Sequence record: KX397371.1
Strand: one strand, 5' to 3'
Length of the DNA stretch: 64,000 nucleotides
Position 1 is the first letter of the stretch. Every line of letters begins with the position of its first letter. Below are positions 2,290-6,924 of this stretch, piece by piece. The position numbers and the translations under genes are program-made. The notes beneath the pieces are model-generated. The model made no database searches, was not told where the DNA came from, and saw nothing but the letters and a program-made list of their open reading frames with translations.

Positions 2290-3129
2290 ATGAGAAAGGT
2301 GCTTTTCGGAATACTTGCAGCGTTGACGTTTAGCATGTCCGCAGTCGCGGCAGACGAAGTAGTGATTACCACAGGACAACAGGGCCTGACCTATAACTCG
2401 GTCTATGGCGTTAATCTGGCCGGTGCCATCAGCGAGTTCGGTACTCGTGCACGGGTCATCCCGTCGAAGGGGTCGTTAGACAACCTCGACAAAGTTGCCG
2501 CCGGTGAAGCCCAGATTGGTTTCACGCAGGCAGATGCTTTCCAGTTCTGGCGCGCTAAGCACCCGAACGAAGCGCAGAACGTTGACATCGTCGGTCAGCT
2601 GGCCCGTGAATGTGTCTGGGTCGCTGTCAAGAAAGATGGCAAAGTTAAAGATGCGAAAGATTTAACCGATGGCGTGAAAATCGCAGTCGGTGAACCGGAC
2701 TCTGGCTCCTACGCCAGTTGGCAATATCTGCAACAGTTGGTGAAAGAGTATTCCAAAGCGGAAACTTACGCCAAGGGCGGCATCCGTTCGTTGTCCAAAG
2801 TGGCAACGGGTGAATACGACGCATTCCTGTGGGTATCTGCGCCGGATAAAAGCAACAAATTCCTCGAAGCGGTCAATCAAGACAGTTCTGGTTTAGAGCT
2901 GATTGACATGAGCACATGGAACGTCAACGACAAACTGCCTAACGGCCAGTCTGTGTACACGAAAGAAACGGCCAAGACAGACAAGACCGCGTTCTTCGGT
3001 AAGAAAGTTGATGTTCCGTGCACCACCACACTCGTCGTGGCCAACACTGACGCTGGTGATGATCTGCTCGAAACCGTTTCTACCATCCTCCTGAAAAACA
3101 ATTCACGAGTGATGGGGGACAAAAAATAA
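2290..3129 (+). CDS. TAXI-family TRAP solute-binding protein
   Basis: N-terminal signal peptide (…MSAVAA/DEV); ITTGQQGLTY, SKGSLDNLDKV, IGFTQAD and AVGEPDSGS motifs fit the TAXI fold. Confidence 0.8.
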   Translation: MRKVLFGILAALTFSMSAVAADEVVITTGQQGLTYNSVYGVNLAGAISEFGTRARVIPSKGSLDNLDKVAAGEAQIGFTQADAFQFWRAKHPNEAQNVDIVGQLARECVWVAVKKDGKVKDAKDLTDGVKIAVGEPDSGSYASWQYLQQLVKEYSKAETYAKGGIRSLSKVATGEYDAFLWVSAPDKSNKFLEAVNQDSSGLELIDMSTWNVNDKLPNGQSVYTKETAKTDKTAFFGKKVDVPCTTTLVVANTDAGDDLLETVSTILLKNNSRVMGDKK

Positions 3130-3135
3130 AAATAT

Positions 3136-3735
3136 GTACTGACCCAGTGCATCTTTTCGGGCTGGGTAGGGTTAATGTCCCTACCTGCGCGGTGTTCGTT
3201 AAGGCTGGTAACGTTCGCTAAGACCTATCGCATACCCGTAAGCCGATAGCAGCCGGTTACACAAAGAACTATCCATGTGGTAGGTAACCGACCGTTCACG
3301 ATCTCATTAGGTGAGCAAATAATCTATGCAAGGACTTCTAGGATTTGTGCTCGACATGATGGGCAGCTTACGCCGCCTCATCAAGCAGTTACGAATCTGG
3401 AAGCTTGCCCATTACTGGTTTACAGGCGAAAAGGCATCTCGTGAGAGTGTGCCATGCAAACTGCGTATTTACATTAGTATGTTCACTGCGGTGAGCATAG
3501 GTCAAGCCCCGGAACGATAAGCCGGTCAGCTACGCCTGTAAAATACAATCTGAAAATCATAATGGGATTAAGTTCCCAGATTTGAAAAGGCGACTGTGTG
3601 TCGTCGGCGATAACCCCCCGTCGTGGACTCGGTTATCCCAAAGGTAATGTGAAAGGGGTTGGTGCTTGGAGACGCTAAGACCGGCGGATACGCTGGCTCA
3701 GAAGAAGAAGTCCATCAACCCCGTTCTCACCTGAG
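3136..3735 (+). ncRNA. candidate large ornate non-coding RNA (~600 nt)
   Basis: Region without a credible CDS, starting at a TATG; more than 10 stems including long-range 3419-3428/3533-3542, 3655-3663/3714-3722 and 3307-3312/3729-3734, plus loop pseudoknot GGACTTC/GAAGTCC. Confidence 0.7.
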
Positions 3736-3744
3736 TAACACCCT

Positions 3745-3767
3745 TTACAAGGCGTTACTTATATATG
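3745..3767 (+). promoter_or_regulatory. middle/late-type promoter (TTAC-N15-TATG)
   Basis: TTAC 3745-3748 and TATG 3764-3767; same spacing as the other copies. Confidence 0.55.
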
Positions 3768-3789
3768 CGAAAGCGAGGTGAACATGGGA

Positions 3790-4110
3790 ATGTATCGTGA
3801 AGGCCCTGAAAGCACGGTGAGTCACCGTAGTCATGATTACTCTGTGGATGCATTGCTGGATATAGCGGAACGCCATAGCCTCGTTCAAATTCCAGTGTCT
3901 AGAATAGAATGGATTTTAAACGAGACTACGCTCGATGACGAGCGGGTTAAGAATGCAGATACGGATTATCCAATAATCGTGCTGCACGAAGGAAGTTTGT
4001 ATATTGTATTAGACGGTGCCCATCGCCTTGCGAAGGCGGTAGCCGAAGGCAAAGACACCATCGCAGCCAAGATATTGGTGCCTGCGAATTTACCGAAACC
4101 GGTACGATAA
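3790..4110 (+). CDS. ParB/sulfiredoxin N-terminal-domain protein
   Basis: YPIIV...VLDGAHRLAKA matches the ParB/Srx DGxHR motif; GAGGTG SD 9 nt before ATG 3790. Confidence 0.7.
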   Translation: MYREGPESTVSHRSHDYSVDALLDIAERHSLVQIPVSRIEWILNETTLDDERVKNADTDYPIIVLHEGSLYIVLDGAHRLAKAVAEGKDTIAAKILVPANLPKPVR

Positions 4111-4116
4111 AAGTCT

Positions 4117-4141
4117 AATTACAAGTTTACACTGTATTATG
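4117..4141 (+). promoter_or_regulatory. middle/late-type promoter driving the tRNA/ncRNA cluster
   Basis: AATTAC 4117-4122 and TATG 4138-4141; upstream AAAGTCTAATTACAAG is identical to the promoter at 834. Confidence 0.7.
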
Positions 4142-4223
4142 TCGGAAACCCGATTTGATGTTGCACAGAGCGTTACGCTGCGGCGTTTGCTGGTGTGCAG
4201 GGTTAGGTCGGGATTCTGGCACC
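4141..4223 (+). ncRNA. rod-like small RNA ending in ACC
   Basis: Starts at the predicted +1 G; 4141-4156 pairs with 4205-4220 (one mismatch); TGCAC/GTGCA inner stem; followed by ACC. Confidence 0.5.
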
Positions 4224-4228
4224 TATTT

Positions 4229-4314
4229 GGCGGGTTACTCAAGCGGTCAACGAGAGCAGACTGTAAATCTGTTGCCTTCGGGCTTCGTAGGTTCAAATCC
4301 TTCACACGCCACCA
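4229..4314 (+). tRNA. trnY: tRNA-Tyr(GTA)
   Basis: Class II cloverleaf, CTGTAAA loop, long variable arm, CCA; G5·A68 and T·T mismatches. Confidence 0.9.
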
Positions 4315-4320
4315 AACAAT

Positions 4321-4538
4321 GGTACCTGTCACAGCAGCCCTTGAGGCTTACGCGATGATGACTGGTCGCCCATTTTACCGGGTAACACATTCCTGCCAGC
4401 GCGCTATTGCCGCGAAGGTTTGCCCCCGGTGTTGTGCGTTATTCGGGTCTACCCACCATCTGCGGATGGTGCGTTGATGTCTCGATATACGCCATAGGGA
4501 CGCCTTGAGAACTCCGTGAAATTCGGAGAGGTACCACC
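4321..4538 (+). ncRNA. tRNA-like acceptor/T module enclosing a ~180-nt structured insert
   Basis: GGTACCT (4321-4327)/AGGTACC (4529-4535) followed by ACC; adjacent 5-bp stem with 7-nt loop CTCCG-TGAAATT-CGGAG. Confidence 0.6.
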
Positions 4539-4540
4539 CA

Positions 4541-4609
4541 TTCTTGTGTTTCCTTATCCTGAAGACATTCGTAAGACAAATCCATTCATGGTCGAGGAAA
4601 CACAGAACC
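4541..4609 (+). ncRNA. small RNA element copy A (paralog of 5843-5913)
   Basis: 13-bp closing stem (1 bulge) TTCTTGTGTTTCCT/AGGAAACACAGAA then CC; interior shares TCCYGAA-GACATTC...CATGGTC with copy B. Confidence 0.6.
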
Positions 4610-4615
4610 TATTCA

Positions 4616-4691
4616 GGTGCTATCGTCTAGTGGCCGAGGATACTACCCTGTCACGGTAGAGACCGGAGTTCGATTCTCCGTAGCACCGCCA
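4616..4691 (+). tRNA. trnD: tRNA-Asp(GTC), copy 1
   Basis: Cloverleaf GGTGCTA/TAGCACC, CTGTCAC loop, GCCA end. Confidence 0.95.
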
Positions 4692-4699
4692 TTTTAAAA

Positions 4700-4775
4700 T
4701 GCGTCTTAGCTCAGTTGGTAGAGCGCTCCCCTGATAAGGGAGAGGTCACTGGTTCAAGTCCAGTAGATGCAACCA
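4700..4775 (+). tRNA. trnI: tRNA-Ile(GAT)
   Basis: Cloverleaf TGCGTCT/AGATGCA, CTGATAA loop, ACCA end. Confidence 0.95.
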
Positions 4776-4781
4776 AACACT

Positions 4782-4860
4782 GGTGTATGTAGTTCAGTTG
4801 GTTAGAATTCTGGCTTGTGACGTCAGAGGTCGGTGAGTTCGAATCTCCCCATACACCCCA
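4782..4860 (+). tRNA. trnH: tRNA-His(GTG)
   Basis: G-1:C73 pair, TTGTGAC loop, CCA end. Confidence 0.95.
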
Positions 4861-4867
4861 ATTTAAT

Positions 4868-4944
4868 AGTGCTGTAGTCGAGCGGTTTAAGACGCCTGCC
4901 TGTCACGTAGGAGATCGTGGGTTCAAATCCCATCAGCACTGCCA
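4868..4944 (+). tRNA. trnD: tRNA-Asp(GTC), copy 2
   Basis: Cloverleaf AGTGCTG/CAGCACT, CTGTCAC loop, GCCA end. Confidence 0.95.
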
Positions 4945-4950
4945 CATTAC

Positions 4951-5027
4951 ATTCCCGTCATCTAGTTGGTCCAGGATACGACACTTTCACTGTCGGTACA
5001 CGAGTTCGAATCTCGTCGGGAATACCA
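4951..5027 (+). tRNA. trnE: tRNA-Glu(TTC)
   Basis: Cloverleaf ATTCCCG/CGGGAAT, CTTTCAC loop, ACCA end. Confidence 0.95.
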
Positions 5028-5032
5028 TTTGT

Positions 5033-5123
5033 AGAGAATTGACTGAGTTGGTTTAAGGTGCTCCCCTGCTAAGGGAGTGTATGCGAAAGTGTACCATTGG
5101 TTCGAATCCAATATTCTCTGCCA
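5033..5123 (+). tRNA. trnS: tRNA-Ser(GCT)
   Basis: Class II cloverleaf AGAGAAT/ATTCTCT, CTGCTAA loop, long variable arm, GCCA end. Confidence 0.93.
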
Positions 5124-5161
5124 TGTTCTCTTGCTGTGGGAAATAGAAGCGAACGTAGAAA

Positions 5162-5240
5162 CGCCGGTTAGCTCAAAGCTTAGAGCGTCTCATCTTCGGA
5201 TGAGAAGGTTGGGGGCGCAACCCGAAATCCCTATCGGCAA
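5162..5240 (+). ncRNA. anticodon-less tRNA-like element (UUCG-capped anticodon arm)
   Basis: GCCGGT/ATCGGC acceptor, TA-GCTC...GAGC D arm, TCTCATC-TTCG-GATGAGA arm, enlarged T loop, no CCA. Confidence 0.6.
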
Positions 5241-5500
5241 CGGCCTGCTTGTCAGGATTAGAAACATCTACGTGGATGGGTACTTCTACAGCAAGAACAA
5301 AACAGTGGGAGCATTGTCCACTGTGACACCGGCAAAGGTTTCGACCTTGCGGGTTGGGCGGAAGCCCGATGTTCCCCCGAACGCTGGCCTTCTGGCCAAT
5401 ACAGTGAAAGCTTACCCTTGCCGATGATCACCTCTTCTGCTGCTGCCAACACACTGTATAACCAGAATCAGTCCTGCCTTAAATGGCAAGCGTTCACCCT
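5241..5500 (+). ncRNA. candidate structured RNA between tRNA-like modules
   Basis: Hairpins ACAGTGG/CCACTGT, AGGT-TTCG-ACCT, GGGC-GGAA-GCCC and ATACAGTG/CACTGTAT; no credible ORF. Confidence 0.45.
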
Positions 5501-5504
5501 TTAC

Positions 5505-5582
5505 GTTTCCTCAAGGCGGCTTGGGGTGTTATCTCTCGGCTCTGTTGGGTAACATCGTGGTTCAACTCCATGGGAAACACCA
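5505..5582 (+). ncRNA. tRNA-shaped RNA with canonical T loop and ACCA but no anticodon loop
   Basis: GTTTCCT/GGGAAAC then A-CCA; CAAG/CTTG mini D stem; ~9-bp arm with 12-nt loop; GTGG-TTCAACT-CCAT. Confidence 0.65.
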
Positions 5583-5588
5583 AACAAT

Positions 5589-5680
5589 GGCTCCGTAGCT
5601 AAATCGGTAGAGGCAGACTTTAATTAGTTCTCCAACGATTTTATAATCGCGTGGTGTAGGTTCAAGTCCTACCGGAGCAA
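5589..5680 (+). pseudogene. degenerate tRNA with two central hairpins and no CCA
   Basis: GCTCCG/CGGAGC acceptor and perfect T arm GTAGG-TTCAAGT-CCTAC; broken D stem; no 7-nt anticodon loop. Confidence 0.55.
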
Positions 5681-5756
5681 GAGCACTGCTGTTAAGTTGG
5701 TTAACACCCGACCCATACTCGGATATTCGCACGTTCGATTCGTGCCAGTGCTCGCC
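5681..5756 (+). tRNA. atypical tRNA with CAT anticodon (Met/Ile2-like)
   Basis: 8-bp acceptor GAGCACTG/CAGTGCTC, 5-bp D stem GTTAA/TTAAC, CCCATAC loop (C33), canonical T arm, G-CC end. Confidence 0.7.
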
Positions 5757-5764
5757 CTTATTTA

Positions 5765-5840
5765 GACTCTGTAGTTCAGTTGGTAGAACGGTGGACTGTT
5801 AATCCATATGTCGCAGGTTCGAGTCCTGCCAGAGTCGCCA
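5765..5840 (+). tRNA. trnN: tRNA-Asn(GTT)
   Basis: Cloverleaf GACTCTG/CAGAGTC, CTGTTAA loop, GCCA end. Confidence 0.95.
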
Positions 5841-5842
5841 CA

Positions 5843-5913
5843 TTTTGCATTGCCCGAGTCCCGAATGACATTCCGGAAAAATATCATCCATGGTCACGGG
5901 CAGTGCAGAACCA
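5843..5913 (+). ncRNA. small RNA element copy B (paralog of 4541-4609)
   Basis: 14-bp closing stem TTTTGCATTGCCCG/CGGGCAGTGCAGAA followed directly by CCA; conserved interior. Confidence 0.6.
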
Positions 5914-6111
5914 AAATCCCAGCCTTCGCAGAAAAAGCTTACCTGCATTAGCGGTCCCCTGCGGGGGTTGGGTACCACCTTTGTCCGTTTTGTTTTTTTC
6001 TTTCAATTGCCTGGCGGTATTGGTGGGAACAAAACGGGTAAAGCCCTAGCGGGGGAAAAGCCGTTAACAACAACAGAAGCAGTAAAAACAGAAGTAAAAG
6101 CAGGAGTAGTT

Positions 6112-6924
6112 ATGTTTACTATCTTACGCAAAATCAATGGTAACCGCACACCAACCGAACACGAATCCCCTACGCTGGGTGATACGAAGTCACAAGTGTT
6201 CAAAGATGCGATGTCGCTTCTTACCGAATCCAATAACGTGCATAACTGCATGGATTCTGGGATGGATGCGAAGCCGTGGATTAACGGCAAACCCAAACCG
6301 ATTGAGGAGTGGGTAGAGCGCTTTAAGAAAGCGTACGGCGCGACAGACTCAGACAACCAAGAACTGGTTTCTCTGGTCAGTGAACTCGCACCGGGAATGT
6401 TTGACAAAGCCAATGCGCGTTTTGCATCGGACTTTGGTCAACTGGAAGAAGCCTTCCTGAAAGATACCGGGCAAACTATCATCTGGAAATGTCCGAACGG
6501 ACTCCCGATTGATATCCAGTTCCAAAACATTCCCCGTCAGTCTGTTGAAACACTACATACCACGCTCGATTTCATCGAAGCGGATGAGTTGAAGTTTGCG
6601 GTGTTCAACAGCAAGGCGTTGTGGGATGGGTATAACTCCGCTGAACTGTTTGGCGGTGAAGCCACCGAGATTTCCTCGGTAGAACTCCAACACGTTTACT
6701 TTGACGATACGGCCATGCCGCAAGAAGCGGTGCTCAAAGCCAACCGTCGTGGTACCCGCACTATGGAACAGGTCATCGGGGTGCTTGCTTATGGCAGCTC
6801 CGAACAACCCGACCCAACCACAGGCAACGTGCCGGTCACAGTGATGACCTACGAGTTTATCTACCAAGGCGATGAAGTCTACATTACGAACCGTCACGGT
6901 AAGACTGTGGACTCCATCCGTTAA
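6112..6924 (+). CDS. hypothetical protein (270 aa)
   Basis: AGGAG SD before ATG 6112; the upstream part of ORF-track 5890..6924 is probably non-coding leader. Confidence 0.8.
   Translation: MFTILRKINGNRTPTEHESPTLGDTKSQVFKDAMSLLTESNNVHNCMDSGMDAKPWINGKPKPIEEWVERFKKAYGATDSDNQELVSLVSELAPGMFDKANARFASDFGQLEEAFLKDTGQTIIWKCPNGLPIDIQFQNIPRQSVETLHTTLDFIEADELKFAVFNSKALWDGYNSAELFGGEATEISSVELQHVYFDDTAMPQEAVLKANRRGTRTMEQVIGVLAYGSSEQPDPTTGNVPVTVMTYEFIYQGDEVYITNRHGKTVDSIR

Follow-up and report, generated by a model that had tools for sequence, protein, structure and literature searches.

Stable tRNA-like RNAs encoded within the tRNA clusters of phages have been known since the 1970s, as exemplified by species 1 and species 2 of phage T4. 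These molecules, also referred to as RNA C (rnaC) and RNA D (rnaD), are stable small RNAs whose function is still unknown (PMC3014915, PMC9697503, PMC12685909). The element described here occupies positions 4321–4538 (+ strand) of a 64,000-nt stretch of DNA, referred to below as the window. With 100% identity and matching coordinates, the window corresponds to the opening 64 kb of the genome of Erwinia phage vB_EamM_Parshik (KX397371.1), a member of the genus Machinavirus and a jumbo phage of 241 kb whose host is Erwinia amylovora. We consider it likely, with a probability of roughly 0.7, that the element is a + strand gene for a stable, non-decoding, tRNA-shaped RNA, and that it represents a family common to several genera of jumbo phages that infect Enterobacterales. 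No description of the 4321–4538 RNA was found in the literature searched, and it is not among the families of Rfam.

The resemblance between the Parshik element and T4 RNA C is one of general design. Both lie within a phage tRNA cluster and on the same strand as the tRNAs. In both, the ends pair in an acceptor-like helix of seven positions that runs into a T arm with a 5-bp stem and 7-nt loop, and two additional arms complete a predicted four-way junction with no anticodon. The details differ, however, as the 139-nt T4 RNA has a canonical T loop (TTCGAAT), two U-U mismatches in its terminal helix, and a tail other than ACC(C/T). A covariance model of the Parshik family, described below, finds nothing in the T4 locus, and BLAST searches retrieve no T4-like phage. 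As far as sequence can tell, the element is a new family that is unrelated to T4 RNA C but follows the same plan.

Other RNAs also carry tRNA-like parts. The small RNAs mascRNA and MEN-beta (RF01684) are uncharged; RNase P frees them, and they are then acted on by the CCA-adding enzyme. They differ from the element in being eukaryotic, ~60 nt long, and 3′ modules of long non-coding RNAs, and the only RF01684 match in the region sits on the tRNA-Asp gene downstream of the element. In transfer-messenger RNA (tmRNA, or SsrA), the tRNA-like domain resembles the element in having an acceptor and T arm around a large non-tRNA interior, with a helix replacing the anticodon stem, while YrlA (RF02553) is similarly a non-coding RNA that carries a tRNA-mimicking module. 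A preliminary description of this DNA, made from its letters alone, had framed the element as tmRNA-like or Y-RNA-like for its tRNA-like top half and its large non-tRNA interior, a reading under which it would serve in trans-translation or as a Ro-tethering RNA. A short frame that begins with GCA (GCA GCC AAT AAA...), read by eye in the long arm of some Erskinevirus and Wellingtonvirus copies, could be taken in favor of a tmRNA. The frame is not conserved, however, and by eye it runs without an early stop in the copies of phages Asesino, SPAsTU, and Parshik. The framing was not borne out by the searches either, since ARAGORN calls no tmRNA at 4321–4538, and neither the tmRNA families of Rfam nor YrlA gives a match there, even at E ≤ 10. 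Weak YrlA matches (25.7 and 15.4 bits, against a gathering score of 69) fall on canonical tRNAs rather than on the element.

Structural differences point the same way. The element possesses neither the G3·U70 pair, nor the conserved tag frame, nor the pseudoknot ring of tmRNA, and it has a hairpin at the D-arm position. The lack of G3·U70 had been correctly noted beforehand: pair 3-70 is T-A in Parshik, as in Machinavirus generally, and C-G in the other genera, and is never G.U among 14 sequences. Pseudoknots are not needed to explain the parts that are conserved. As for Y RNAs, the 5′ and 3′ ends of YrlA form a Ro-binding stem, and its tRNA-like part is internal (PMC4201824, plus general knowledge of Y RNAs), whereas the ends of the element make an acceptor stem. 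In view of these differences, kinship in function with tmRNA or Y RNA is very improbable. For a possible Ro partner, Pfam was run on nine open reading frames (ORFs) near 4321–4538, out of the whole 241-kb genome, and no TROVE (Ro/Rsr) domain was detected in these nine.

The element falls within an unannotated 300-nt gap between tRNA-Tyr (4229–4314) and tRNA-Asp (4616–4691), in a tRNA cluster that spans 4229–5840 on the + strand. Its ends are joined by a perfectly paired 7-bp stem, GGTACCT (4321–4327) with AGGTACC (4529–4535). The 3′ strand of this stem is abutted, with zero gap, by the 5-bp/7-nt hairpin CTCCG-TGAAATT-CGGAG (4512–4528), and the two helices together constitute the 12-bp top half of a tRNA. 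The stem is followed by A4536-C4537-C4538, and the next base is C, so that CCA is not encoded. The stem, the hairpin, and the A-CC had been reported in the preliminary description and hold on inspection, as do the absence of TTC from the T loop, the AACAAT spacer before both 4321 and 5589, and three internal hairpins (AGCC/GGCT, CCGGG/CCCGG, and ACCATC-TGCG-GATGGT), each of which is present in the minimum-free-energy fold. A strict scan, which required seven Watson-Crick pairs next to a 5-bp/7-nt hairpin, plus NCC, located five places on the two strands of the window, namely the element and four bona fide tRNAs, while random windows generated by a first-order Markov model gave a mean of 0.1 matches. 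The single-sequence fold of the element is moderately better than that of shuffled sequences (z = −2.55). The observation at 4321–4538 is confirmed and goes beyond chance. A coding region was rejected as an identity for this stretch. The GenBank annotation of Parshik has no ORF over it, and Machinavirus copies differ from one another by indels of 1–3 nt, which argues against coding.

The interior had been regarded as a free insert of 180 nt, a view that did not survive comparison with relatives. Instead, it is an ordered series of D-position hairpin, linker, long arm, and second linker, and on comparative sequence evidence the RNA is a cloverleaf-like four-way junction, consisting of a 7-bp acceptor on a 5-bp T arm, a hairpin termed P2, and a long arm termed P3, without an anticodon loop. 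Around the junction, the parts follow one another as in the cloverleaf of a tRNA (acceptor, hairpin at the D position, single nucleotide, arm at the anticodon position, short linker, T arm, and acceptor again), although the 8–9 linker, the D loop, and the anticodon loop are all missing. Reading from the 5′ side, the leader AACAAT (4315–4320) places a T at −1 of the predicted RNase P cut. Following the acceptor 5′ strand, P2 (4328–4362) takes the position of the D arm, with an outer stem (4328–4331 with 4359–4362) and the inner AGCC/GGCT hairpin. A 1-nt linker, T4363, stands in the place of tRNA position 26, and a T precedes GG(C/T) here in 14/14 sequences of the family. The base of P3 is formed by the pairing strands of helix P3a, GGTCGCCC (4364–4371) and GGGACGCC (4497–4504), and encloses a variable apical domain of ~125 nt (4372–4496) for which two branches, 4376–4431 and 4433–4494, are predicted. 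The linker TTGAGAA (4505–4511) then replaces the tRNA variable loop and is 6–7 nt long in every copy. It leads into the T arm, the acceptor 3′ strand, and the 3′ tail A-C-C-C (4536–4539), comprising a discriminator A and CC and reading ACCC or ACCT in 14/14 copies.

Since this layout is that of a cloverleaf-like junction inside a tRNA cluster, an unconventional decoding tRNA should be weighed, such as one with a spliced intron in its anticodon arm. ARAGORN does call an odd gene nearby (5589–5680) as a tRNA with extra sequence, and in one respect the element itself looks like a tRNA, in that its 7-bp acceptor stacks on a T stem of 5 bp and it has a discriminator base with CC. On the other hand, ARAGORN called 10 other genes in the window, 4321–4538 not among them. 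The Rfam tRNA model (RF00005) gives no match to the element at its gathering score or at E ≤ 10, and no intron family matches it; at E ≤ 10, the sole overlapping line from Rfam is a snoRNA match at the level of chance (E = 8.6). Throughout the family, the arm at the anticodon position is 50–140 nt long with no conserved 7-nt loop, and P2 has no GG loop of the D-arm kind. In the genus Seoulvirus, the P3 interior is ~40 nt, which is too small for a group I intron, and its removal does not yield a 7-nt anticodon loop. Positions 55-56 of the T loop are G-N rather than the usual T-C. A decoding role is accordingly a very remote prospect.

The family consists of 14 distinct sequences, 118–220 nt in length, from four genera of jumbo phages: Machinavirus, Seoulvirus, Erskinevirus, and Wellingtonvirus. 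Full-length BLAST matches, 92–100% identical, come from the Parshik/Huxley/Machina group, pEa_SNUABM_6, _10, _42, and _43, and Salmonella phage pSal-SNUABM-04. Matches in the other genera cover only the last ~45 nt (linker, T arm, acceptor 3′ strand, and tail), at ~90% identity. Machinavirus copies are 216, 219, or 220 nt long, while complete copies measure 118–120 nt in Seoulvirus (SPAsTU and pEa_SNUABM_29), 143–145 nt in Erskinevirus (phiEaH2 and Asesino), and 151–156 nt in Wellingtonvirus (Kwan, Wellington, and pEa_SNUABM_11). One family copy lies on the minus strand of its locus (L036:8573–8792). When a covariance model is derived from only seven of the short copies, with zero Machinavirus sequences among them, it recovers Parshik 4321–4539 from end to end, with a score of 44.8 bits (E about 1e-8).

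Further variants from the same phage groups emerged when IMG/VR and the JGI metagenomes were scanned for the motif, and a scan of GTDB with one genome per bacterial species returned zero family members. The other motif matches from IMG/VR, JGI, and GTDB were set aside as ordinary tRNAs that share the T arm, mostly initiator-like tRNA-Met, or as chance matches. As a separate observation, seven loci on metagenome contigs carry unrelated, initiator-like tRNA-Met genes (anticodon loop CTCATAA) with the same unusual T arm. In these genes it reads CTCCG-TGCGATT-CGGAG or CTCCG-TGCAATT-CGGAG, so that position 55 is G instead of T.

The 14 sequences allow the structure to be followed helix by helix. 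In the acceptor, every cell of pairs 1–6 is paired. In Machinavirus, pair 2-71 is G-C and pair 3-70 is T-A, for which the other genera have A-T and C-G, respectively. Pair 6-67 is C-G, T-A, or T.G. Pair 7-66 may be T-A, T.G, G-C, or C-G, and is mismatched in three Erskinevirus copies and in pEa_SNUABM_29. A register shift of one nucleotide is seen in the three Erskinevirus copies, such that G7 pairs in P2 instead of the acceptor stem. Thus, the acceptor-like terminal stems, for which a covariation check had been proposed, are both conserved and covarying across genera. The outer 4 bp of P2 start at nt 8 and occur in seven fully paired versions (GTCA/TGAC, GTCT/AGAC, GTTA/TAAC, GCAC/GTGC, TCCC/GGGA, GACC/GGTC, and GACT/AGTC), and an invariant GA sits immediately 5′ of the P2 3′ strand. 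This outer stem lies outside the covariance model, as the alignment register is one column off between genera, and its pairs were counted from anchors.

At the base of the long arm, P3a takes the form GGCAGC/GCAGCC in the other genera, with a central AxA mismatch, an invariant GG/CC, and a third pair that is C-G or T.G; its 3′ strand belongs to the ~45-nt 3′ block that is ~90% identical between genera. In Erskinevirus and Wellingtonvirus, P3a is followed by an internal loop in which CAATAAA faces AAGT, and then by P3b (RGC/GCY), an inner helix that covaries (GGC/GCC versus AGC/GCT). Pairing of TGGC with GCCA/GCTA was considered as the base of the arm and dropped, because GCY covaries with the inner RGC and because GGCAGC/GCAGCC yields a tRNA-like linker of 6–7 nt. 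The tip of P3 accounts for the differences in size, ranging from a single hairpin of ~40 nt in Seoulvirus, through ~65 nt in Erskinevirus and Wellingtonvirus, to the two-branched ~125 nt of Parshik. Within it, the hairpin at 4454–4471 displays a compensatory change among Machinavirus copies.

On the 3′ side, the linker at the variable-loop position occurs as TTGAGAA, TTTAGAA, TTAGAA, or GTATAA, and the T stem is invariant in the 14 distinct sequences. The T loop has the form T-G-N-R-A-T-T, and its positions 56-57 differ even between near-identical phages. The variants are TGAAA, TGGAA, TGAGA, TGGGA, and TGCAA, such that T54, G55, and A58 never change and only purines occur at position 57. In its general form, the T-loop motif comprises five bases, U-(G/U)-N-R-A, with a reverse Hoogsteen U-A pair closing the unit, and the family loops agree with this consensus at the sequence level. 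What they have lost, relative to a real tRNA, is psi55-C56, the bases that dock the D loop.

Taken together, standard pairs occupy 96.8% of cells on the model-based alignment, as opposed to 37–52% with slid partners, and double-sided changes amount to 22 cells, as opposed to 0–3. The observed covariation score was reached by 0/500 shuffles. Double-sided changes occur at three acceptor pairs and at three P3b pairs. The strand can be assigned as + because G.T pairs on this strand would become A-C mismatches on the other.

These patterns also bear on the notion that the element is a decaying tRNA pseudogene with insertions, i.e., neutral sequence at a place where tRNA genes come and go. The order and content of tRNA genes do vary greatly among these phages, and the element is not universal. 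A pseudogene would nevertheless be hard to reconcile with a single architecture in four genera, compensatory changes in three helices, and an invariant T stem and ACC tail. Moreover, its varied neighbors show that the element moves as a unit, leader included. ACAAT or ACAAC stands before every listed copy, whether the upstream feature is a tRNA, another element, or a coding sequence (CDS). Extraction of the copies demanded CAAT or CAAC, and covariance-model matches, which do not depend on the leader, begin at the same base. Neutral decay is therefore an improbable account.

Maturation of a non-decoding, tRNA-shaped RNA from this locus would make use of the tRNA machinery. The element would be co-transcribed with the tRNA cluster and cut by RNase P between T4320 and G4321. 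Bacterial RNase P recognizes a coaxial stack of acceptor and T arm, G at +1, a pyrimidine at −1, where U is preferred, and a 3′ R-C-C that pairs with the P15 loop. Family copies have G at +1 and A-C-C in 14/14 cases, and at −1 there is a T in 12 copies and a C in the other two. Exonucleases would trim the 3′ trailer until stalled at the run of C, and the CCA-adding enzyme may then add the final A. CCA is encoded in six neighboring tRNA genes detected by a looser scan, and in every other canonical tRNA of the cluster that was read. Scans of 3700–6200 for sigma-70 promoters and intrinsic terminators returned only background levels. The earlier idea of a tRNA-processed carrier stands in so far as an acceptor/T-arm top half encloses a non-tRNA interior and has conserved terminal stems, which fits excision by the tRNA machinery. 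The tmRNA/Y-RNA comparison and the free insert that accompanied the idea do not stand.

The processed RNA is probably not aminoacylated, since pairs 2-71 and 3-70 are free to change, which makes an acceptor identity set for a synthetase unlikely, and since CCA is not encoded. The shell would lend it the stability of a tRNA and give it access to tRNA-binding proteins. The core is conserved whereas the tip can be replaced, which suggests the tRNA-like shell together with the base of P3 as the functional part. Our best guess is that the RNA acts as a tRNA mimic, occupying a host or phage protein that recognizes tRNA as either a decoy or a scaffold. Its specificity would come from the conserved P3 base and the internal loop of that arm.

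Alternatively, the element might work only in cis, as tRNA-like punctuation or a spacer that steers cuts by RNase P and RNase E and aids folding of the tRNA precursor, and would have no function once released. Its position inside the tRNA cluster and its absence from some relatives are compatible with this, as is the fact that the best-conserved parts (T arm, acceptor 3′ strand, ACC, and leader) are those read by processing enzymes. A 12-bp minihelix would suffice as punctuation, however, and neighboring tRNAs of the cluster are separated by 5–9 nt, with no spacer needed. Further, P2, P3a/P3b, and the internal-loop sequences (CAATAAA/AAGT) have been kept across genera through compensatory changes. 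A purely cis-acting role is thus possible but rather unlikely.

Several points weigh against a stable RNA that acts in its own right. The T stem and most of P3a are invariant and hence uninformative on pairing. The sequences are related, and some of the covariation reflects few events inherited by several phages, so that the counts overstate the number of independent events. By the covariance model, there is no copy in the close relatives ChrisDB, Caitlin, pEa_SNUABM_4, and pEa_SNUABM_9, nor in Klebsiella phage FBKp24, and BLAST leaves the family unmatched outside the four genera. It follows that the element is dispensable in some settings. The negatives from the model and from the genome scans mark the family as accessory and, as far as the collections show, as confined to this group of jumbo phages. 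Lastly, Pfam scans of the nine ORFs near the element turned up no RNA-related domain; they are uninformative, and no partner protein for a decoy or scaffold was found among these ORFs.

Directly downstream of the tail lies a hairpin module at 4540–4615 (+ strand), GTGTTTCC.../...GGAAACAC, with a fold z of −3.4 and, across seven phages, a covarying stem. The module directly follows tRNA-Asn, the last tRNA gene of the cluster, in Asesino, pEa_SNUABM_29, Caitlin, pEa_SNUABM_4, and ChrisDB, rather than adjoining an element of the 4321 type. It is probably a separate unit that lies outside the RNA. There is no T tract 3′ of the module, and it could be a 3′ processing or stabilizing element.

Additional tRNA-like folds occur elsewhere in the cluster. 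The 465-nt gap at 5124–5588 is filled with structures bounded by acceptor-like stems, partly under the annotated gp18. The first, at 5163–5240, is a tRNA-like cloverleaf with the acceptor GCCGGT/ATCGGC, TA at positions 8-9, a D stem (GCTC/GAGC), and, in place of the anticodon loop, a 7-bp stem with a UUCG tetraloop; neither ARAGORN nor Rfam calls it. Element C (5307–5378) is cloverleaf-like and ~70 nt long, is bounded by GGGAGCA.../...TGTTCCC, and has one arm capped by UUCG and another by GGAA. In its homologues from SPAsTU and pEa_SNUABM_29, pair 7 changes from A-T to G-C. Element B (5379–5502), of ~120 nt, has the terminal stem GAACGCT/AGCGTTC followed by ACCC, and a 4-bp/6-nt hairpin beside its 3′ strand. 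The 3′ 37 nt of element B are 92–97% identical in ChrisDB, Caitlin, pEa_SNUABM_4, _8, and _9, and homologues of the whole element, 58–121 nt in length, were found at seven loci. The last, at 5505–5584, measures 77 nt plus tail and combines a canonical T arm (GTGG-TTCAACT-CCAT) and an encoded ACCA with a tetraloop hairpin at the D position and an “anticodon” stem of 9–10 bp; it is missed by ARAGORN and by the Rfam tRNA model. For two of the elements within 5163–5584, homologues are present in other genera, and the terminal stems of these show wobble or compensatory changes. An AACAAT-like leader precedes several of the non-canonical elements but not the canonical tRNAs that were read.

The element at 4321–4538 is thus one of a set, accompanied in the operon by at least four more tRNA-like elements that do not decode (5163–5240, 5307–5378, 5379–5502, and 5505–5584), and several members have a tetraloop or a long arm at the place of the anticodon loop. 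It is conceivable, though we regard it as unlikely, that this set of at least five tRNA-shaped RNAs in Parshik-like jumbo phages constitutes a class of tRNA decoys. Such decoys would ride on tRNA maturation and would titrate tRNA-directed host immunity (anticodon or acceptor-end nucleases and nucleotidyltransferase toxins) or capture enzymes of tRNA processing.

Annotation of the region calls for a few comments. The gp18 CDS (5131–5427), a hypothetical protein of 98 aa with no Pfam match, overlies the structured RNA elements and is probably an annotation artefact. The gene at 5589–5680, called “tRNA-Ile(aat)”, is 92–94 nt long, has a long extra arm, does not encode CCA, and scores 31.4 bits with Rfam. 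Directly after it, at 5682–5753, is a tRNA with anticodon CAT in which position 33 is C instead of T and CCA is lacking; it scores 38.9 bits with Rfam and is missed by ARAGORN. The Parshik GenBank record calls the gene at 4228–4315 tRNA-Asp(gtc), although its anticodon according to ARAGORN is GTA (tRNA-Tyr), and Huxley and other relatives have the identical gene annotated as tRNA-Tyr. A gene at 2290–3129, a short way upstream of the tRNA cluster, resembles TAXI-family solute receptors of TRAP transporters (Pfam NMT1_3, E = 4e-16), and the same pairing of a TAXI-family gene with a tRNA cluster is found in Asesino, Caitlin, and distant Klebsiella FBKp24 phages.

The family would provide a second, unrelated example of the kind of RNA represented by T4 RNA C, and one whose structure is clear from comparison. 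Its copies vary naturally in size (118–220 nt), which sets a conserved core apart from a replaceable tip, and natural presence or absence in close relatives, together with sister elements in one operon, offers fresh material on such RNAs. Genes of this kind are missed by annotation pipelines, and in one case a probably spurious ORF (gp18) has been placed over them. Should these RNAs turn out to serve tRNA-binding proteins as decoys or scaffolds, the current view of phage tRNAs as a counter to tRNA-targeting defenses would gain an RNA layer, and a decoy class, if real, would also hint at what T4 RNA C and RNA D do.

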